Assembly: GCA_002104945.1 (NCBI GenBank)
Contig: MCFH01000036.1
Span: 372,001-436,000 of the forward strand
Direction: 5' to 3'
Source of the DNA: Piromyces finnis finn
Lineage: Eukaryota > Fungi > Neocallimastigomycota
DNA length: 64,000 nucleotides
The notes under the pieces were generated by a model that was given only the letters and a program-made list of their open reading frames with translations, searched no databases and was not told the origin of the DNA. A program made the position numbers and the translations under genes. Below are positions 6,837-20,299 of this stretch, in pieces; positions within the stretch are counted from its first letter, which is position 1, and each line of letters begins with the position of its first letter.

Positions 6837-7866
6837 ATTTAGTTTTTTTTTATAAAAATTATAATAATCAAATAACAATGATTACTTTAGTGGTTATTTT
6901 CAATAAGATAAAAAAAAGAATCATTTACCCAATTTTTTATTTATACATATTTGTGTAAATAAAACCCTTGTTAAGATTATCTAATATAATTAATTATTAA
7001 AAATAAATAGGGTAAGGTTTTAATTTAATTATAGATTATTATATATAAATAAATTATAACTCTATATTAAAAATGATACTAATATGTATTTATATAATAT
7101 AATATAATATATATGTAATTATTAGGTTAAAGCATTAAAATAGTATTCAATAGGGTAAAAAGTATTTAAGGATACAAATTTTTATTTTTTTTATTCAAAT
7201 TAGAAAAACAATATAGTAAATTTTTTTTATTGAGTTATTAGTTTTCGTCTACAATAATAGAGTTAAGGGAAAAAGAAAAGAGAAAACTAATGAAAAAAAA
7301 TTGAAAAGGGGAAAATAACACACTAAAATGATTTATGCATATTTATTATTATTTAATTATTTTTTTTTAAATGTTTTTAATTTTTAAAAAGAAAAAATAT
7401 TTTATTAAATATATCTTTGGTAATATTTTTTATTTTTTAAACTCACACATTCATTATAAAAACATATCTTACCATGTATATATTTTAAAATCTTTTTTCT
7501 TTTCATATTAACAATTTTATTTTATATAAATCATTTTAATTCGTATTTATATATATATATTTAGTTTTAATTATTTTATTACTAATAATTCATTGCACAT
7601 ATTAATAAAATTTAAAAAAAAAAAAAAAAAATTGAAAAATTTTTATATAAAGAATTATTTGTGTAGAATGTGAAAGTTTTTAATGAATTATCTTTTGGAT
7701 TTAAGAAAAATATGGTATTTTTGAAAAATTATGATTTTTTAAATATTTGGTAATAATAATATTAATTTTGGTAATCAATTTGACTTTTTTTGTGGTAGAA
7801 GTTTTGAGTTGATTTAATTTTTATTTAGGATATGATTTAGATGAATTTATTAAATGGAATAAAATC

Positions 7867-7878
7867 TACCGTGAGCTA
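7867..7878 (+). repeat. Outer target-site duplication TACCGTGAGCTA (partner at 19143-19154)
   Basis: Exact 12-bp direct repeat flanking both LINE copies; the right copy directly follows the poly(A) of copy 2. Confidence 0.9.
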
Positions 7879-7890
7879 CCCTCTTGGAAT

Positions 7891-8138
7891 CCCTCTTGGG
7901 AACGTGCCTTCATTTATTTAATAAATGTAGTTTCTCAAGGGGGTCTACTCATGCTCATGGTACTGAGAGAGTAGAAAGAATTAAATCCAAGTATTGCGCA
8001 ATGGATGCTTGGTGCCCTCTTAGGAATGTGCCTTCATTTATTTAATAAATGTAATTTCTCAAGGGGGTCTACTCATGCTCATGGTACTGAGAGAGTAGAA
8101 AGAATTAAATCCAAGCATTGCGCAATGGATGCTTGGTT
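7891..8138 (+). repeat. Two tandem 124-bp 5' monomers of LINE copy 1 (one monomer in copy 2, ~13579-13702)
   Basis: CCCTCTT starts recur at 7891 and 8015; ATTGCGCAAT recurs at 7993 and 8117 (period 124); the units differ by a few substitutions. Confidence 0.95.
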
Positions 8139-8781
8139 AGTCTTTAAGGGAAAATTATTAAGACTAAGCTCATGGTACTGAGCGATTAAAAAACATTTTA
8201 TTCATCAAATTTAAGTATTTGATGAATAAGTGAATGTTTGATTTTTCAGGTAAGTTTGTATAGTATTTAATTAGAAGAGTAATACATTTTGTTGCTGTAT
8301 TTTTTCTTTTATTCATGTATTCATGTAGTACTACTCTTCTCTTGTAAGAATCCAATGTAGTCAACTTTAGCATTTGCATTGTACTTTTATATTCATGTAG
8401 CTATTGTTGTATTGTTTCTTGTAAGAGACTGATTCACTCTACATCATGTAAAAATACTATTCACAAGCTTTCTGGTGTCGACATTCTTGATTCAAATTTT
8501 TTACCAATTTAAATATTTAATGAAAAGTAAAGTCAAACAAGTTTAGTGTCAAAAAGCGAATCGAATTTACTAACAACAAACCAAAACTAGAATTTTTAAA
8601 GAAAATTTACAACTAGAATTCAAAAAAAAGAAACTTTAAACAAAGCATCGTAACAATTTTTGTACTATCCAGTACTTTTAAGAAGAGAGAGAGAGACAGA
8701 TTTTTTTCCATATACGTTATATTTGTAATTTTTATTAGTATTTATTTTATATTCAATATTTTTTAATTAGAATTTATTATC

Positions 8782-11700
8782 ATGTCAGTCCTTTATATTA
8801 AAGATAAGAATTATATCAGACGTGGTACCCGGTCTTATGGTATCCCCTTAGATGATATTCGCTCCTTCTTTATCCGTGGTATTCGATCATGGTCAGTAAA
8901 TATGCTATGGGAAAAACTCGAGGTTATTCTAGAAGATAAATTTAATTCAGTTATTAGTGTTAAATATTTTCAAACTTTCAATGATCACTTTTTCTTAGTC
9001 AAGGTTCATGGTTCATCAAAAGATTGTATTAAAATCTTACACATGTTAAAGAAGAAACTTTCAGTTACCTCAATTTCCTTTTCAGCTCGTAGTAGAAGGA
9101 ATCACAAATACACTTTTTCCACTCTCAAACGTAAAATTTTAGTTTCTAATAAACATCAACATTCTATTCAACAATCATTTCAACAATCAGTTCAACAATC
9201 TCATCAACAATCCGATCTTCAACAAGATCTTCAACAGGATCTTCAACAAGTTTCCCATCATGAAAATATTCCAGATCTACAGCAAACACAATTTCAATCT
9301 CAACATTCAACAATTAATTCTAATAGTTCTATCAACTCTGATAACAGTTCAATAGTTGATAGTTCTTCAGTTTCACAGCCATCTAGTAATAGTTCTACTT
9401 ATTCCTCTGATGCATCATCCATTAATAACGATGACTTTAATAATAATAATAATAGCAACGATTCTTCCTCATCCAACAAGCCTGATAACTTTTCTTTTTG
9501 TCTTAGTTGGAACACCAATGGGTGGAATCATGAAAAGAGGGATAGTATTAGCTATTTCACAGCTATTTTCAAACCATTATTCTTATGTTTCCAAGAAACT
9601 GGTAATGGTTCTGGTTCGAATACAGATTATCCTTGTCGTGTTACTTTGCGAAACTATAGACACTTTTTCAAGAAAGCTGACGAATCAGTTCCGGGAATGA
9701 GAGGTTTATATTTAGGTTTTCACAATTCGTGTCAAGCCTCACTTGAAAACTTCTCTGGAAAGTATATTATTTCTATTTATACTTTTAGTCTCTGGAATAG
9801 ATTCAAATGCTCGATTGGAAATGTTTATATGCCTCATAGTCATCACAACATCTATGTTGATCATGCAAAGTTAGAAGTTCGCTTGTGGTTACAAACTCAT
9901 TCATCCCATCCATCGATTCTTGTTGGTGATTTTAATATGTCTAAAGTAAAATTATCCAACTGGTTATCAACTAATGGATTAGGAGATTGGGAAATTCTTC
10001 CGCTTAGAGGGTCTACTATCTCTTGGACTCGAGGTGATCAATCTTCCGACATTGACCATGCTCTTATCAATTCGAAGATGAAAGATCTTATTCACTCAGG
10101 ATCATTTATAAATAATTTTTATCCTGTATCAGACCATAAGCCACTTCTTATTAATGGTAAAATTATTCCTATGGAAGATTTTTCTAATGACTTTAACGTT
10201 CCTAAGAAAATTCTGAAATGGAATAGATTAAAATGTACTGAGGAAAAGGAATCTATTCTCAGTCATAATAAATTCCAAATACTTTCAGCAAAATTCAACG
10301 ATCCTAATGCTTCTACAGATGAACTTTCCAAAGAATTTACTTCAACTGCTTTTTCAATTGCAGACGAGCTCAGTATTACCTCAGCAAATAATGTTATAAA
10401 GTCTTCATTTCATATTTCACAACAAATTTTTAATCTCCAAAAAATCAAAATGAAGTTGTATAAGAGATTTAAAAAAGAAAGAATTTATGATATAGATGAA
10501 TTTATTAAAAGAATTAAAATCTACCGTAAGCTCATTGATTACATCCACAAAAGATGTAATGAATTTAGGAAGCAAGAATATCTTCATTGGATTAAAACAG
10601 GATGTGAGTATATGAAGAGTCATAATCCTAAGAAGGCCTGGAAATGGATCAAAAAAACTGCAAAAATTGGAAAAGATTCTTTCTTTATTGCTCAACCAAT
10701 TAAAAACAAAAATGGAGAATTAGTTGTTGCTACGGAAGAACAACTAGATGTGTGGCATGATCATTTCGAAAATCTTGCATCAGATCCAAGTGGTGTAAGT
10801 CTTGATTTGGAGCATTGGTATGAAGAACCAACGAATAAACGTTTTTCACTTCCTATGCTTGATGAGTGGGATATCAACCAAGATATTAGTATTGATGAAG
10901 TCAAGTCAGCTATCCTCTCTACTCCAAATTATAAAGCATCAGGTCCGGATGGTATTCCAATTGAATTTTACAAAGCATTAATTCCATCAAGTAATGATTC
11001 TAATAATGCTACAGATAATAATTCTTCTGGTAATACTACTTCAGATAATGATGCTCATGGTTTAAATTTTATTCTTAAATTATTTAACCGTATTTGGGAT
11101 GGAGATTTCCCCAACTCATGGAATGAATCCAGTATTGTTTCTATTCCTAAGAAGGGAGATTTGACAGATTGTGATAACTATCGAGGTATATCACTTATCA
11201 ATAATGGTATTAAGTTGATCTCCAAAATTGTCACCACTAGAATCTCAGAATATGGTCTAAAGAATAATTTCATTAGACCTGAACAATTTGGTTTTCGAAA
11301 AAAGGAAGAAAGTATCAGTCTTTTCATTTCAATCCAAGAAATATGCCGTAGACGTCAATTAGATAATAAAGAGACATATTTGGCCTTTTTAGATCTCAGG
11401 AAAGCATACGATTCAGTCCCAATCGGTAATATTCTCCATAAATTAGATTGTTTAGGAATCCGAGGTAAGAGTTTACAATTTATCAAAAATTTATATTTAA
11501 CATCTAAGGCTAATGTCAAATTAGATGGACAATTCTCGAAATCTTTTGATGTGAAGAAAGGAGTCCGTCAAGGTTGCCCTCTTTCTCCTATTCTCTTTAA
11601 TCTCTTTATTAATGATATATTTAGAGAGTGCGAAGATCTAGGAGTCAGTTTAGGTGACACTCGATGCTGTGGTGGACTTTTTGCAGATGATATAGTTATT

Positions 11701-13305
11701 TGTGCTCCAACAAGAGGATGCTTAAAAAAGATGCTTAGAAGAGTTAATGAATGGGCACTGTATAATGAAATGGAATTTGGTATCCAGAAATGTTCAACGA
11801 TGGTGATTCGTCCTGAATCAATAGAAAATCAGAACAAGAGAGATCCAACATTTTACTTAGCAGGACAACCCATTCCAACTACTGATTGCTATACTTATCT
11901 TGGTGTTCCATTTGATAAGAATCTGTCCCTTAAACCAGTAATTAAAGCTCTTAATAACAAGGTTTTGAAAGGACTTTTCTCAGTCAGTAAATTCTTAAGA
12001 AATCCTAATATTCCTATTCCTTTCAAAAAACTAGTACTTAACTCACAAGTGATTAGCAGAGTTTCATACTTTGCACCATTACTTGGATCCAACAAAGCTA
12101 GGTCTAGGATTGCTCAGAAGCATGTTAACAAAGGAATACGATGGGTTGCCGGAGTTCATAAAGCTGTATCGTTTATATCTTTATACTCTATCTCAAAAGA
12201 TTTGAATATTCCTCCATTGTCAGCCAAATGTGCGTTAGCTCAGGTTAGATGTTTTAACAAATGGAAAAACTCAAATTGTATTATCTCACACCTTGTCAAT
12301 TACATTCCTAAATTTAGAAAATACACGTGGTGCAAATCAAGTAGGACACTTGATAAAAAATTAAAGAAACATGGAGATGTTAAAGCAGTTAAAAACTTTT
12401 ATTGGAAAGATCTCAAAGGGAATTCAATCAAAGCGCAATATTATGATGATAATAAATTTATTGAAACTAAAGATTTTATTAAATTATGTTATGAGTACCC
12501 AGAGTTTGCCTATGGCTTCTACTGGCTATTGAAAGCAAGAAGCGGATACAAGTTGGATGCTAGAGTTGCCAAAGCTGCCAAATTTGTTGATCCAGTTTGT
12601 CCTAACTACTGTCCATGTTGCAAGTGTGGAGATCAAAGTATTAAACATTGGTTATTAGATTGTCCAACATTTAGAGATATCCGTATTAAACATTATGATT
12701 CCATAGTCCAGCTATTAAATTTTTTCAGTCAACGTAATTCCAATAGTCCTATCAATAATAATGAAATTGATAATATCAGTAGAGATAGTAATAACATTAA
12801 TAGTAATAGTAACAATAGTAGTAATAACAATAGTAATAGTAACAATAGTAATAGTAACAATAGTAATAATAACAATAATAGAAATAATAATATTAGTAAT
12901 GATAGCAATAGTGAAGATAATAATTCTAATTTAGATAGTAATTTAGTTAATGATAGTAATAGTTCTAATAATCCGGTGAATATTAATGTGTATGATTATT
13001 CTAGTGTGTGCAGTAAAATATTTAAATTCCTTCTTGGGGGAAGAAGTTTTAACAATATCAATTACAATTCAAGGGAATGGAAAGAACTTTGTAAGCGTCA
13101 GATTCAATCTGGTACTAATGAAGGAGCACCATTCTTGACGGTAACCGCGGAACTTCTAACCAAAATCATGCCTTTTGCTATTGGCCAGCAATGGTCAATG
13201 TTCAAAAGGTTTGAAGCAACATCCAAGAGCGTCAATGCTGAAGAAACAGTAAGACAGGCCAGGAGGGCCAGCGCAACCAATGGAGATCATAATTTTGTTC
13301 CATGA
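8782..13305 (+). CDS. LINE polyprotein: N-terminal basic domain, Q/S-rich linker, APE endonuclease, reverse transcriptase, C-terminal Cys/His zinc-binding motif
   Basis: APE motifs SWNTNG, CFQETG, VGDFN, IDH, SDHKP. RT motifs SGPDGIP, IPKKGD, YRGISL, QFGFR, FLDLRKAYDSV, GVRQGCPLSP, LFADD, YTYLG. C-terminal CPCCKC..SIKHWLLDC. No RNase H or integrase motifs seen. Confidence 0.95.
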   Translation: MSVLYIKDKNYIRRGTRSYGIPLDDIRSFFIRGIRSWSVNMLWEKLEVILEDKFNSVISVKYFQTFNDHFFLVKVHGSSKDCIKILHMLKKKLSVTSISFSARSRRNHKYTFSTLKRKILVSNKHQHSIQQSFQQSVQQSHQQSDLQQDLQQDLQQVSHHENIPDLQQTQFQSQHSTINSNSSINSDNSSIVDSSSVSQPSSNSSTYSSDASSINNDDFNNNNNSNDSSSSNKPDNFSFCLSWNTNGWNHEKRDSISYFTAIFKPLFLCFQETGNGSGSNTDYPCRVTLRNYRHFFKKADESVPGMRGLYLGFHNSCQASLENFSGKYIISIYTFSLWNRFKCSIGNVYMPHSHHNIYVDHAKLEVRLWLQTHSSHPSILVGDFNMSKVKLSNWLSTNGLGDWEILPLRGSTISWTRGDQSSDIDHALINSKMKDLIHSGSFINNFYPVSDHKPLLINGKIIPMEDFSNDFNVPKKILKWNRLKCTEEKESILSHNKFQILSAKFNDPNASTDELSKEFTSTAFSIADELSITSANNVIKSSFHISQQIFNLQKIKMKLYKRFKKERIYDIDEFIKRIKIYRKLIDYIHKRCNEFRKQEYLHWIKTGCEYMKSHNPKKAWKWIKKTAKIGKDSFFIAQPIKNKNGELVVATEEQLDVWHDHFENLASDPSGVSLDLEHWYEEPTNKRFSLPMLDEWDINQDISIDEVKSAILSTPNYKASGPDGIPIEFYKALIPSSNDSNNATDNNSSGNTTSDNDAHGLNFILKLFNRIWDGDFPNSWNESSIVSIPKKGDLTDCDNYRGISLINNGIKLISKIVTTRISEYGLKNNFIRPEQFGFRKKEESISLFISIQEICRRRQLDNKETYLAFLDLRKAYDSVPIGNILHKLDCLGIRGKSLQFIKNLYLTSKANVKLDGQFSKSFDVKKGVRQGCPLSPILFNLFINDIFRECEDLGVSLGDTRCCGGLFADDIVICAPTRGCLKKMLRRVNEWALYNEMEFGIQKCSTMVIRPESIENQNKRDPTFYLAGQPIPTTDCYTYLGVPFDKNLSLKPVIKALNNKVLKGLFSVSKFLRNPNIPIPFKKLVLNSQVISRVSYFAPLLGSNKARSRIAQKHVNKGIRWVAGVHKAVSFISLYSISKDLNIPPLSAKCALAQVRCFNKWKNSNCIISHLVNYIPKFRKYTWCKSSRTLDKKLKKHGDVKAVKNFYWKDLKGNSIKAQYYDDNKFIETKDFIKLCYEYPEFAYGFYWLLKARSGYKLDARVAKAAKFVDPVCPNYCPCCKCGDQSIKHWLLDCPTFRDIRIKHYDSIVQLLNFFSQRNSNSPINNNEIDNISRDSNNINSNSNNSSNNNSNSNNSNSNNSNNNNNRNNNISNDSNSEDNNSNLDSNLVNDSNSSNNPVNINVYDYSSVCSKIFKFLLGGRSFNNINYNSREWKELCKRQIQSGTNEGAPFLTVTAELLTKIMPFAIGQQWSMFKRFEATSKSVNAEETVRQARRASATNGDHNFVP

Positions 13306-13538
13306 CAAAATTTTGATCTTTGGCTCGGTGTCCCATTGGAAGTCAAATACAATTATTATACTTTAGTATGATAGTGGCTTTCTTACTTTAATTAAAATTA
13401 CTAGAATACATTATACCCAATTTTTATTCATTTGTGTTTATTTAAACATATTTTTTTTATTTTTATTATTTTTAATTATTTATTACATGTATTATAATTT
13501 TAATTAAATTAATAATAAAGTTTAAAATATTTGATGCC

Positions 13539-13576
<38 letters not shown>

Positions 13577-13579
<3 letters not shown>

Positions 13580-13589
13580 CCTCTTGGAA
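13577..13589 (+). repeat. Inner target-site duplication TACCCTCTTGGAA (partner at 7877-7889)
   Basis: Exact 13-bp direct repeat; the right copy directly follows the poly(A) of copy 1 and is also the 5' end of copy 2. Confidence 0.8.
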
Positions 13590-14346
13590 ACGTGCCTTCA
13601 TTTATTTAATAAATGTAGTTTCTCTAGGGGGTCTACTCATGCTCATGGTACTGAGAGAGTAGAAAGAATTAAATCCAAGTATTGCGCAATGGATGCTTGG
13701 TTAGTCTTTAAGGGAAAATTATTAGGACTAAGCTCATGGTACTGAGCGATTAAAAAACATTTATCCATCGAATTTAAGTATTTGATGAATAAGTTGAATG
13801 TTTGATATTCAGGTAAGTTTGTATAGTATTTAATTAGAAGAGTAATACATTTTGTTGCTGTATTTTTTCTTTTATTCATGTATTCTTGTAGTACTACTCT
13901 TCTCTTGTAAGAATCCAATGTAGTCAACTTTAGCATTTGCATTGTATTTTTATATTCATGTAGCTATTGTTGTATTGTTTCTTGTAAGAGACTGATTCAC
14001 TCTACATCATGTAAAAATACTATTCACAAGCTTTCTGGTGTCGACATTCTTGATTCAAATTTTTACCAATTTAAATATTTAATGAAAAGTAAAGTCAAAC
14101 AAGTTTAGTGTCAAAAAGCGAATCAAATTTACTAACAACAAACCAAAACTAGAATTTTTAAAGAAAATTTACAACTAGAATTCAAAAAAGAAACTTTAAA
14201 CAAAGCATCGTAACAATTTTTGTACTATCCAGCCAGTACTTTTAAGAAGAGAGAGAGAGACAGATTTTTTTCCATATACGTTATATTTATAATTTTTATT
14301 AGTATTTATTTTATATTCAATATTTTTTTAATTAGAATTTATTATC

Positions 14347-17300
14347 ATGTCAGTCCTTTATATTAAAGATAAGAATTATATCAGACGTGGTACCCGGTCT
14401 CATGGTATCCCCTTAGATGATATTCGCTCCTTCTTTATCCGTGGTATTCGATCATGGTCAGTAAATATGCTATGGGAAAAACTCGAGGTTATTCTAGAAG
14501 ATAAATTTAATTCAGTTATTAGTGTTAAATATTTTCAAACTTTCAATGATCACTTTTTCTTAGTCAAGGTTCATGGTTCATCGAAAGATTGTATTAAAAT
14601 CTTACACATGTTAAAGAAGAAACTTTCAGTTACCTCAATTTCCTTTTCAGCTCGTAGTAGAAGGAATCACAAATACACTTTTTCCACACTCAAACGTAAA
14701 ATTTTAGTTTCTAATAAACATCAACTTTCAATTCAACAATCACTTCAACAATCAGTTCAACAATCTCATCAACAATCCGATCTTCAACAAGATCTTCAAC
14801 AGGATCTTCAACAAGTTTCCCATCATGAAAATATTCCAGATCTACAGCAAACACAATTTCAATCTCAACATTCAACAATTAATTCTAATAGCTCTATCAA
14901 CTCTGCTAACAGTTCAATAGTTGATAGTTCTTCAGTTTCACAGCCATCTAGTAATAGTTCTACTTATTCCTCTGATGCATCATCCATTAATAATGATGAC
15001 CTTGATAATAATAATAATAGCAACGATTCTTCCTCATCCAACAAGCCTGATAACTTTTCTTTTTGTCTTAGTTGGAACACCAATGGGTGGAATCACGAAA
15101 AGAGAGATAGTATTAGCTATTTCACAGCTATTTTCAAACCATTATTTTTATGTTTCCAAGAAACTGGTAATGGTTCTGGTTCGAATACAGATTATCCTTG
15201 TCGTGTTACTTTGCGAAACTATAGACACTTTTTCAAGAAAGCTGACGAATCAGTTCCAGGAATGAGAGGTTTATATTTAGGTTTTCACAATTCGTGTCAA
15301 GCCTCACTTGAAAACTTCTCTGGAAAGTATATTATTTCTATTTATACTTTTAGTCTCTGGAATAGATTCAAATGCTCGATTGGAAATGTTTATATGCCTC
15401 ATAGTCATCACAACATCTATGTTGATCATGCAAAGTTAGAAGTTCGCTTGTGGTTACAAACTCATTCATCCCATCCATCGATTCTTGTTGGTGATTTTAA
15501 TATGTCTAAAGTAAAATTATCCAACTGGTTATCAACTAATGGATTAGGAGATTGGGAAATTCTTCCGCTTAGAGGGTCGACTATCTCTTGGACTCGAGGT
15601 GATCAATCTTCCGACATTGACCATGCTCTTATCAATTCGAAGATGAAAGATCTTATTCACTCAGGATCATTTATAAATAATTTTTATCCTGTATCAGACC
15701 ATAAGCCACTTCTTATTAATGGTAAAATTATTCCTATGGAAGGTTTTTCTAATGACTTTAATGTTCCTAAGAAAATTCTGAAATGGAATAGATTAAAATG
15801 TATTGAGGAAAAGGAATCTATTCTCAGTCATAATAAATTCCAAATACTTTCAGCAAAATTCAACGATCCTAATGTTTCTACAGATGAACTTTCCAAAGAG
15901 TTTACTTCAACTGCTTTTTCAATTGCAGACGAGCTCAGTATTACCTCAGCTAATAATGTTATAAAGTCTTCATTTCATATTTCACAACAAATTTTTAATC
16001 TTCAAAAAATCAAAATGAAGTTGTATAAGAGATTTAAAAAAGAAAGAATTTATGATATAGATGAATTTATTAAAAGAATTAAAATCTACCGTAAGCTCAT
16101 TGATTACATCCACAAAAGATGTAATGAATTTAGGAAGCAAGAATATCTTCATTGGATTAAAACAGGATGTGAGTATATGAAGAGTCATAATCCTAAGAAG
16201 GCCTGGAAATGGATCAAGAAAACTGCAAAAATTGGAAAAGATTCTTTCTTTATTGCTCAACCAATTAAAAACAAAAATGGAGAATTAGTTGTTGCTACAG
16301 AAGAACAACTTGAAGTGTGGCATGATCATTTCGAAAACCTTGCATCAGATCCAAGTGGTGTAAGTCTTGATTTGGAGCATTGGTATGAAGAACCAACGAA
16401 TAAACGTTTTTCACTTCCTATGCTTGATGAATGGGATATCAACCAAGATATTATTATTGATGAAGTCAAGTCAGCTATCCTCTCTACTCCAAATTATAAA
16501 GCATCAGGTCCAGATGGTATTCCAATTGAATTTTACAAAGCATTAATTCCATCAAGTAATGATTCTAATAATGCTACAGGTAATAATTCTTCTGGTAATA
16601 CTACTTCAGATAATGATGCTCATGGTTTAAATTTTATTCTTAAATTATTTAACCGTATTTGGGATGGAGATTTCCCCAACTCATGGAATGAATCCAGTAT
16701 TGTTTCTATTCCTAAGAAGGGAGATTTGACAGATTGTGATAACTATCGAGGTATATCACTTATCAATAATGGTATTAAGTTGATTTCCAAAATTGTCACC
16801 ACTAGAATTTCAGAATATGGTCTAAAGAATAATTTCATTAGACCTGAACAATTTGGTTTTCGAAAAAAGGAAGAAAGTATCAGTCTTTTCATTTCAATCC
16901 AAGAAATATGCCGTAGACGTCAATTAGATAATAAAGAGACATATTTGGCCTTTTTTGATCTCAGGAAAGCATACGATTCAGTCCCAATCGGTAATATTCT
17001 CCATAAATTAGATTGTTTAGGAATCCGAGGTAAGAGTTTACAATTTATCAAAAATTTATATTTAACATCTAAGGCTAATGTCAAATTAGATGGACAATTC
17101 TCGAAATCTTTTGATGTGAAGAAAGGAGTCCGTCAAGGTTGCCCTCTTTCTCCTATTCTCTTTAATCTCTTTATTAATGATATATTTAAAGAGTGAAGAT
17201 CTAGGAGTCAGTTTAGGTGACACTCGATGCTGTGGTGGACTTTTTGCAGATGATATAGTTATTTGTGCTCCAACAAGAGGATACTTAAAAAAGATGCTTA

Positions 17301-18874
17301 GAAGAGTTAATGAATGGGCCTTGTATAATGAAATGGAATTTGGTATCCAGAAATGTTCAACGATGGTGATTCGTCCTGAATCAATAGAAAATCAGAACAA
17401 GAGAGATCCAACATTTTACTTAGCAGGACAACCCATTCCAACTACTGATTGTTATACTTATCTTGGTGTTCCATTTGATAAGAATCTGTCCCTTAAACCA
17501 GTAATTAAAGCTCTTAATAACAAGGTTTTGAAAGGACTTTTCTCAGTCAGTAAATTCTTAAGAAATCCTAATATTCCTATTCCTTTCAAAAAGCTAGTAC
17601 TTAACTCACAAGTGATTAGCAGAGTTTCATACTTTGCACCATTACTTGGATCCAACAAAGCTAGGTCTAGGATTGCTCAGAAGCATGTTAACAAAGGAAT
17701 ACGATGGATTGCCGGAGTTCATAAAGCTGTATCGTTTATATCTTTATACTCTATCTCAAAAGATTTGAATATTCCTCCATTGTCAGCCAAATGTGCTTTA
17801 GCTCAGGTTAGATGTTTTAACAAATGGAAAAACTCAAATTGTATTATCTCACACCTTGTCAATTACATTCCTAAATTTAGAAAATACACGTGGTGCAAAT
17901 CACTTGATAAAAAATTAAAGAAACATGGAGATGTTAAAGCAGTTAAAAACTTTTATTGGAAAGATCTCAAAGGGAATTCAATCAAAGCGCAATATTATGA
18001 TGATAATAAATTTATTGAAACTAAAGATTTTATCAAATTATGTTATGAATACCCAGAGTTTGCCTATGGCTTCTACTGGCTATTGAAAGCAAGAAGCGGA
18101 TACAAGTTGGATGCTAGAGTTGCCAAAGCTGCTAAATTTGTTGATCCAGTTTGTCCTAACTACTGTCCATGTTGCAAGTGTGGTGTTCAAAGTATTAAAC
18201 ATTGGTTATTAGATTGTCCAACATTTAGAGATATCCGTATTAAACATTATGATTCCATAGTCCAGCTACTAAATTTTTTCAGTCAATGTAATTCCAATAG
18301 TCCTATCAATAATAATGAAATTGATAATATCAGTAGAGATAGCAATAACAGTAATAGTAATAGTAACAATAATAATAATAACAATAGTAATAATAACAAT
18401 AGTAGTAATAGTAATAATAGAAATAGTAATAATAACAATAGTAGTAATAGAAATAATAATATTAATAATGATAGCAATAGTGAAGATAATAATTCTAATT
18501 TAGATAGTAATTTAGTTAATGATAGTAATAGTTCTAATAATCCGGTGAATATTAATGTGTATGATTATTCTAGTGTGTGCAGTAAAATATTTAAATTCCT
18601 TCTTGGGGGAAGAAGTTTTAACAATATTAATTACAATTCAAGGGAATGGAAAGAACTTTGTAAGCGTCAGATTCAATCTGGTACTAACGAAGGAACACCA
18701 TTCTTGACGGTAACCGCGGAACTTCTAACCAAAATCATGCCTTTTGCTATTGGCCAGCAATGGACAATGTTCAAAAGGTTTGAAGCAACATCCAAGAGCG
18801 TCAATGCTGAAGAAACAGTAAGACAGGCCAGGAGGGCCAGCGCAACCAATGGAGATCATAATTTTGTTCCATGA
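14347..18874 (+). pseudogene. Disrupted LINE polyprotein (split into ORFs 14347..17196 and 17177..18874)
   Basis: GAGTGCGAAGAT in copy 1 reads GAGTGAAGAT here: a 2-nt deletion at ~17194, between GVRQGCPLSP and LFADD. There is also an in-frame 9-nt deletion (SRT lost, ~17901). Confidence 0.85.
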
Positions 18875-19111
18875 CAAAATTTTGATCTTTGGCTCGGTGT
18901 CCCATTGGAAGTCAAATACAATTATTATACTTTAGTATGATAGTGGCTTTCTTACTTTAATTAAAATTACTAGAATACATTATACCCAATTTTTATTCAT
19001 TTGTGTTTATTTAAACATATTTTTTTTATTTTTATTTTTATTTTTTAATTTTTTATTACATGTATTATAATTTTAATTAAATTAATAATAAAGTTTATAA
19101 TATTTGATGCC

Positions 19112-19145
<34 letters not shown>

Positions 19146-19217
19146 CGTGAGCTAATCAATTATATCCATAAAAGATATAATGAGTATAGGAAACAAGAAT
19201 ATCTTTATTAGATTAAA

Positions 19218-19512
19218 ACAATATCAATTATAATTCAAGGGAATGGGAAGAACTTTGCAAGTGCCAGATTCGATCGGACACTTATGAAGGAATATCATTC
19301 TTGACGGGTAACAGCGGAACTTCTAACCAAAATCATTCCTTTTGTTATTGACCAGCAATAGTCAATGTTCAAAAGGTTTGAAACAACATCCAAGAGCGTC
19401 AATGCTGAAGAAACAGTAAGACAGGCCAGGAGGGTCAGCACAACCAATGGAGATCATAATTTTGTCCCATGATAAAATTTTGATCTTTGATGCTGTTTAA
19501 AAAAAAAAAAAA
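19218..19512 (+). mobile_element. 5'-truncated, diverged relic of the same LINE family (copy 3)
   Basis: Matches the last ~260 nt of the ORF (..TCCAAGAGCGTCAATGCTGAAGAAACAGTAAGACAGGCCAGG..) with stops and indels, followed by a shortened 3'UTR and a 14-nt poly(A). Confidence 0.9.
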
Positions 19513-19530: not shown

Positions 19531-19571
<41 letters not shown>

Positions 19572-20299
19572 CAATTAGCAGAAAAGAAAATTCAAAGAAA
19601 AATTTAACTTTAGGAAAGTTTATAATTTGATTCCAATTTTTAATATTCCTTACCAAACTCAACAACTTTGGGATTTTTTATTCTTTGAAAAGGAATATAG
19701 TTTTCAATGATAAATATTTTAAAAAGACTTTTACAATTTATTATAGAGCATATATTAATAATATCCATTTATTATCAATCCATATTGTTTAACTCTTTTT
19801 TTTTTTTTTTTTATTATATGTTTTAATTTTTTTTTTCTTTGGGAGGGTATTATTTTTTAATTATATTTTTAATTTTTCTTATTCATTTCTTCGTAGTGTT
19901 TTTTTTTTTTTTTTTTTTTTTTAATTTATTTTTTAGCTATTCCTAAAGCTATTAATTATTTCTTTTACATATATATTATTAATGAATTATTTTTATATAT
20001 GTCTATCTAATTATCTAATTCATCAATACGATACAATAGGTTATTTAAAAATTTAAATGCCTATAATATATATAATATGAATATTGATTTGTAAATATTT
20101 TATTTTTAGGATTTTAATTATATATAATAAATTATGATATAATTATGTAATATCTATAATTTTTATGAGATATTGTTACATAAAAACGTTTTATAATAAT
20201 ATTTTATAATAAATATATGATTTTTTTTTTGAATAAGTAAATAACTTTTTCTTAAAAGTCATATTTACTTTAATTATTTACAATTGTACTTTGATCATC

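Follow-up and report, generated by a model that had tools for sequence, protein, structure and literature searches.

Three nested copies of an L1-like LINE in the anaerobic gut fungus Piromyces finnis

Within the genome of Piromyces finnis finn (assembly GCA_002104945.1), positions 372,001 to 436,000 of the forward strand of contig MCFH01000036.1 form a 64,000-nucleotide stretch, referred to here as the window. Between 7891 and 19142 of this window, two co-oriented copies of a long interspersed nuclear element (LINE) lie head to tail. Each copy is about 5.6 kb in length and ends in a poly(A) tail, and the two are 97.9% identical. The base composition of the window is 12-25% G+C outside the element and about 30% within it. 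The locus raises two questions: how did such a dimer arise, and was the element directed to its landing sites by a short sequence word or by the DNA of its own family? The inner copy is called copy 1 and the outer copy, which copy 1 interrupts, is called copy 2.

A nest of three copies

The locus is bounded and divided by two overlapping target-site duplications (TSDs). From left to right, it consists of the outer TSD, the first 11 nt of copy 2, an extra T, copy 1 with its A35 tail, a 13-mer that leads into the remainder of copy 2 with its A28 tail, and the outer TSD again (Table 1). The 12-bp outer word TACCGTGAGCTA flanks the whole dimer and the 13-bp inner word TACCCTCTTGGAA flanks copy 1. 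Each word occurs exactly twice in the window, whereas shuffled sequences give 0 expected occurrences. The 13-mer also accounts for a partial 5′ repeat at 7879-7890, in which 7879-7889 is the detached tip of copy 2 and 7890 is a filler T. This 11-mer carries the GGAA variant of copy 2 rather than the GGGAA of copy 1. Fillers of 1 nt (G, C, or A) are also present at other nested junctions in genomic contigs.

Both flanks of the dimer (7831-7878 and 19155-19512) belong to an older copy of the same LINE, copy 0, which is 5′-truncated and internally deleted. With the duplicated word included, 7831-7877 matches element positions 10486-10532 and 19143-19220 matches 10521-10599. Further to the right, relic positions 19217-19489 match element 13051-13322 at 91.5%, and an A14 tail at 19499-19512 is followed by CTTAAG. 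When the two flanks are rejoined with a single 12-mer, they align to copy 1 (10486-10599) without a gap and with 98 of 114 positions identical (86%); at the outer target position, the intact copies read TACCGTAAGCTC. The rejoined flanks therefore constitute a paralogous empty site, and the 12-bp duplication is proven. The structure is a three-level nest: the relic contains copy 2, whose 5′ junction in turn received copy 1, and all three are on the + strand. For the relic itself no clear TSD emerged, as ATTTAGGAT and ATTAAAGGAT show weak resemblance only.

Short-read contigs assembled with 31-letter words were compared against window positions 7750-13720 (5,971 letters); the DNA run behind them may be from the source sample. 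A 302-nt DNA contig matches 7750-7916 without any difference at a depth of 143, which is close to the level of other unique junctions (148-178). Because of this identity, the outer 5′ junction, the detached 11-nt tip, and the extra T are not assembly noise.

The divergence of the two full-length copies bears on their order of insertion. Copy 1 and copy 2 differ by 86 substitutions, and a 2-bp deletion near 17194 in copy 2 is the only frame-breaking difference between them. Among the listed positions there are 25 at which most of the family depth departs from copy 1, and copy 2 carries the family base at 17 of these; at most other differences between the two copies, the copy 2 base is found in less than 10% of the family. 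By this comparison, copy 2 is roughly three times further from the family majority than copy 1. The greater divergence and the frameshift of copy 2 fit an order in which the relic came first, copy 2 second, and copy 1 last.

In the sequence of events that best explains the nest, copy 0 was already in place, 5′-truncated and internally deleted. A target-primed reverse transcription event then placed copy 2 at the relic's counterpart of element position 10522, duplicating 12 bp. The first nick for copy 1 fell 2 nt upstream of the 5′ end of copy 2, so that the 13 bp duplicated comprised 2 nt of the old TSD and the first 11 nt of copy 2, and one untemplated T was added.

The reverse order, in which copy 1 came first and copy 2 entered its A-tail, was rejected. 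It leaves the 11-nt piece and T at 7879-7890 and the 13/13 identity of the inner words unexplained, requires chance matches of both the 7879-7889 piece and the "TA" at 13577-13578, ignores the GGAA variant, and conflicts with the more decayed state of copy 2.

Two successive target-primed insertions with nested TSDs thus explain the structure, as the original prediction had proposed from the letters of the locus. Its two overlapping duplications, its use of the 13-mer to explain the partial 5′ repeat, and its younger, intact inner copy within an older, frameshifted outer copy all hold. It treated the locus as a dimer, however, and missed that the flanking DNA is a relic of the same family.

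Landing in its own copies

In the short-read contigs, a nested junction consists of an older copy, then filler, then a new 5′ start, each at single-copy depth; the junction list comprises the 12 best supported of 20 filler-bearing joints. Besides those of the window, it includes nine nested junctions: three at 7921, where the fillers are G, C, and A, and one each at 8082, 10599, 10897, 11514, 13077, and 13657. All nine are in the same orientation (P about 0.002). The region of the 5′ monomers, about 4% of the element, contains five of the nine (P about 2e-5, or 0.003 by distinct sites), and the three independent events at 7921, distinguished by their filler bases, share monomer position 31. 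At the junction that joins 8082 to 7891, the filler is 15 nt long and is a partial 5′ tip. This repeats the pattern of tip, filler, and full start seen at 7879-7891, and tip insertions therefore recur.

Because the outer target lies inside an older copy, the reading of the locus shifts from a sequence word to landing in the family's own copies. The best explanation overall, and probably the correct one, is that the locus holds three nested copies of an L1-like LINE family with a real but non-exclusive habit of landing in its own copies, co-oriented with them and mostly in the 5′ monomer. This tendency builds head-to-tail arrays. Targeting, as opposed to the survival of harmless insertions, would be the cause of the bias.

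A tentative extension, itself rather doubtful, is that the DNA of the element's own 5′ end, or of its promoter monomer, is what the LINE actively recognises and inserts into, with new copies co-oriented and returning to identical nucleotides. The route may be pairing between its RNA and either homologous DNA or an open promoter. Such recognition would build the head-to-tail arrays and may also generate the tandem 5′ monomers of the element. Endonucleases of the apurinic/apyrimidinic (APE) class are usually thought to have only short nick-site preferences. If true, self-recognition would amount to self-directed targeting by this class.

Several observations weigh against the self-landing explanation. 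Both of the two nick sites in the window share C/TACC (the slash marks the nick), a word with a frequency of 3e-4, and self-preference leaves this unexplained. The inner junction at 13576/13577 is not bridged by contigs because the A35 tail exceeds the 31-letter assembly word, and the inner and outer 3′ junctions lack read confirmation; a 60-nt word search over the inner junction, in which three words were sampled, returned matches from unrelated organisms. The junctions come from the 12 best-supported joints of 20, and the monomer excess and the 9/9 co-orientation may be partly a product of selection. Finally, the abundance of the family makes some nesting expected by chance. The LINE stretch was matched by 10,725 contigs, with a summed depth of about 4e5 against a single-copy depth of about 150, a ratio that should not be read as a copy number. 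On this rough estimate, the extremely abundant family may make up at least one fifth of the genome.

Among the alternatives, the one that survives best, though it is unlikely, holds that the APE endonuclease prefers C/TACC (bottom strand GGTA/G) and that the outer TSD together with the CCC of the element rebuilt the word for the second insertion. This is the model of the original prediction. As it had claimed, both reconstructed empty sites read C/TACC and neither contains a T-run; they also share a T at +6. CTACC is rare, with 38 sites on both strands of the window (3e-4 per strand position), and the relic was struck at its only CTACC, the equivalent of 10521. However, 34 of these sites are empty, including internal positions 10521 and 16086 of the two full copies. 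None of the seven other junction positions has TACC or CTACC 8-18 nt upstream, and no TAC occurs within 30 nt of four of the seven, one of which is the triple hot spot at 7921. The two matching nick sites, although their agreement is unusual for so rare a word, are also a sample of two chosen after the fact.

The sequences that follow other poly(A) tails point the same way. The relic is followed by CTTAAG. In four related elements (51-70% protein identity), the sequence after the poly(A) is TTTTTAAAC, CCGAATTC, CAATTCTA, and TCTTAATT, and none begins with TACC; the same four 3′ flanks are also written TTTTTAAAC, CCGAATTCTAT, CAATTCTATT, and TCTTAATTTAAG. These four relatives come from collapsed metagenome contigs of about 5 kb. 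Specificity for C/TACC is unproven and probably not general, and the word is at most a minor contributor, although a weak, non-exclusive preference for TACC may exist.

C/TACC as a general target is consequently not supported, and neither is the proposed likeness to the site-specific R1/Tx1/TRAS kind, since junctions occur at many positions and 34 CTACC sites are empty; the APE domain that the original prediction inferred is present. The related proposal, that the element's own 5′ junction forms a target and so allows head-to-tail arrays, is true at this locus only. The 5′ junction is not a general self-made target: the second site takes its "CTA" from the outer TSD, the element does not supply it, and no general rule for building arrays follows.

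As a separate observation, two rumen LINEs of different subfamilies (L016:5563-5575 and L018:5589-5600) share the 8-mer AATTCTAT within 3 nt of the poly(A). Its presence after both tails may reflect chance or a common target.

A second alternative dispenses with targeting altogether: in a genome saturated with this LINE, insertions into genes are purged and insertions into other copies survive. The extreme abundance of the family, whose summed depth is thousands of times the single-copy level, and the spread of junctions over many positions of the body (e.g., 10599, 10897, 11514, and 13077) are in its favor. It is nevertheless improbable, as it does not explain three independent events at one nucleotide, the excess in a monomer region of 124-250 bp, or the co-orientation of all nine junctions, and it does not account for a copy that landed within 2 nt of a 5′ end.

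LINE 5′ ends are known to show template jumps and filler bases. The dimer could in principle be the product of a single event, in which the reverse transcriptase, having reached the 5′ end of one LINE RNA, switched to the poly(A) of a second and only the outer TSD was generated. The 15-nt filler between 8082 and 7891, which places a partial 5′ piece before a full start, is compatible with such a jump. At this locus, the jump account is very improbable because three jumps would be required, together with two coincidences: the "TA" between the A35 tail and copy 2 must equal the last 2 nt of the outer TSD, and 7879-7889 must carry the GGAA of copy 2 rather than the GGGAA of copy 1. Two ordinary insertions with 12- and 13-bp TSDs account for all of these features, and the unequal private divergence of the copies fits two dates.

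An assembly artefact, such as a mis-join or repeat over-expansion in the long-read assembly, is hardly credible: the inner and 3′ junctions are without independent read confirmation, but an artefact does not produce two matched, overlapping TSD pairs, the flanks rejoin into a contiguous homologue of 10486-10599, and the 5′ junction is present in a short-read contig of single-copy depth. Targeting of tRNA genes in the style of the Dictyostelium TRE elements was rejected, as the window contains no tRNA and no Rfam family.

Anatomy of the element

The features of the nest are collected in Table 1. The element has a single open reading frame (ORF), and no second ORF of at least 100 aa is present in the 5′ region, i.e., there is no separate ORF1. 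Residues about 241-452 form an APE endonuclease domain (PF03372, 31.5 bits; cut-off 24.5), N-terminal to a reverse transcriptase domain (RVT_1, 124 bits, aa 788-1043). C-terminal of the latter, the match to zf-RVT is weak (E 0.034), although a C..C..H..C pattern is visible in the translation. The first 230 aa of the ORF have no Pfam match.

Table 1. Coordinates of the three LINE copies, their domains, and their duplications in the window.
Feature	Position	Strand	Remarks
Relic copy 0, left part	7831-7866	+	Homologous to element 10486-10521
Outer TSD, left, TACCGTGAGCTA	7867-7878	+	Inside relic copy 0; matches 10522-10533 of intact copies
Inner TSD, left, TACCCTCTTGGAA	7877-7889	+	7879-7889 is the detached 5′ tip of copy 2
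Filler nucleotide T	7890-7890	+	At the 5′ junction of copy 1
Copy 1, inner/younger full-length LINE	7891-13576	+	A35 tail at 13542-13576
Copy 1 5′ monomers	7891-8014 and 8015-8137	+	Two in tandem, 124 bp each
Copy 1 intact ORF	8782-13305	+	1507 aa
Copy 1 APE domain	about 9502-10137	+	PF03372
Copy 1 reverse transcriptase domain	about 11143-11910	+	RVT_1
Copy 1 Cys/His knuckle	about 12601-12675	+	C..C..H..C pattern in translation; zf-RVT weak
Inner TSD, right, TACCCTCTTGGAA	13577-13589	+	
Copy 2, outer/older full-length LINE	13579-19142	+	A28 tail at 19115-19142
Copy 2 single monomer	13579-13701	+	
Copy 2 ORF pieces	14347-17196 and 17177-18874	+	Broken by one 2-bp deletion near 17194
Outer TSD, right, TACCGTGAGCTA	19143-19154	+	
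Relic copy 0, right part	19155-19512	+	19155-19220 matches element 10534-10599, internal deletion, then 19217-19489

In a PDB sequence search, the best solved relative of the protein is human L1 ORF2p (2e-33, versus 3e-18 for R2). The closest protein relatives are at most 69% identical and come from rumen and gut metagenomes, Orpinomyces, and Neocallimastix, which by itself points to an anaerobic gut fungus as host. The poly(A) tails (A35, A28, and A14) and the TSDs of variable length (13 and 12 bp) are as in APE-type LINEs of the L1 group. Depth in the RNA run climbs toward the 3′ end of the LINE and depth in the DNA run is flat, and the family is therefore transcribed. To judge from its sequence, the element is an autonomous, transcribed, single-ORF LINE of L1 type with APE and reverse transcriptase domains, a class assigned from the domains and the PDB search.

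Proteins P0121, P0122, P0135, and P0149 are close relatives of this LINE that are filed under metagenome-assembled genomes of Methanobrevibacter and Gammaproteobacteria. They almost certainly derive from mis-binned fungal contigs.

The 5′ region of the element contains the tandem monomers. New copies in genomic contigs begin exactly where a monomer does (7890-7893 or 8015-8024), and each 124-bp monomer therefore seemingly sets its own transcription start. The promoter monomers of mouse L1 each do so. Within the 5′ leader, the 77 nt at 8662-8738, which begin with GT and end with TTTTATTAG, are absent from one genomic DNA contig with a depth of 247. This contig looks like a copy of a spliced transcript, and the leader may hold a functional intron; the spliced form was not seen in the RNA contigs.

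The DNA contigs also contain many single-copy deletion joints within the LINE body, such as those that join 9552 to 13409, 10911 to 12226, and 11853 to 12920. Internally deleted copies that resemble the relic are therefore common. The relic itself lacks about 200 bp of the 3′ untranslated region (compare 13323-13530), with the break between two TTTGAT-like words, and retains the last 15 nt or so before its tail (TTTGATGC.GTT). The terminal word before the tail is conserved in relatives as TTTGCTGCCGTT, and it may be a recognition target of the reverse transcriptase.

To the right of the relic, a T33 run at 19533-19565 begins 20 nt past the A14 tail, with T17 and T24 runs beyond it (about 19566-19925). 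These runs may represent the poly(A) tail of an element on the minus strand, e.g., a short interspersed nuclear element (SINE), and the stretch has no Rfam or tRNA match. Elsewhere in the window, self-BLAST identified no further repeat family, tblastn identified no further LINE copy, and the listed A- and T-runs included no additional clear insertion with a TSD.

Known self-nesting LINEs and the gut-fungal genome

Site-specific APE LINEs such as R1, Tx1, and TRAS/SART place essentially all of their copies at one defined target. The Piromyces LINE resembles them in its APE endonuclease and in that both nicks in the window fall at a word that is not T-rich and does not pair with poly(A). It differs in that its junctions are scattered over many positions and the majority of CTACC words are unoccupied.

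Zepp, from the green algae Chlorella and Coccomyxa, is an L1-like LINE that forms clusters of mutually nested elements (PMC3446292) and is grouped with the L1 elements (PMC5203782). Like Zepp, the Piromyces LINE is of the APE/L1 type, carries a poly(A) tail, and is nested in its own copies. In Zepp, each chromosome has about one such cluster, which is GC-rich, made up mostly of truncated copies, and regarded as centromeric or telomeric, whereas the Piromyces LINE is AT-rich and extremely abundant, has a single ORF and tandem 5′ monomers, and repeatedly hits its own monomer or tip.

Two fungal non-LTR elements, Cnl1 of Cryptococcus and MoTeR of Magnaporthe, are reported to prefer their own copies as targets and to form head-to-tail arrays, and their sequence specificity is still undefined (PMC12810828; bioRxiv 10.1101/2021.08.11.455996). 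Cnl1 belongs to the R2 superfamily, is subtelomeric, and adjoins telomere repeats (PMC12810828); no TTAGGG-type telomere repeat is present in the window. These elements carry a C-terminal restriction-like endonuclease (RLE), unlike the Piromyces LINE, in which the APE endonuclease is N-terminal to an L1-like reverse transcriptase.

In Drosophila, tandem R1 elements, jockey, and others form head-to-tail dimers through double insertion, with the target duplication kept in the junction (PMC5932611). R1 forms them because it is strictly specific to ribosomal DNA, with a 33-nt duplication. In the Piromyces nest, the second hit is instead offset to the 5′ junction of the first copy, and the TSDs overlap rather than being identical.

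The element thus displays a self-preference of the Zepp/Cnl1 kind, non-exclusive in nature, and lacks the single defined target by which the R1/Tx1/TRAS kind is recognised. Self-nesting behaviour of a LINE is already known from Zepp, and no new target motif is established here. A literature search found no paper on the LINEs of anaerobic gut fungi.

Anaerobic gut fungi have very AT-rich, repeat-laden genomes. The locus adds a clean three-level example of self-nesting with a built-in empty-site control. The family is an APE-type parallel to Zepp and to Cnl1, which is of the RLE type. A family that piles onto itself would explain how the genome tolerates thousands of active elements, and it would also explain the origin of LINE arrays and perhaps of the tandem promoter monomers.

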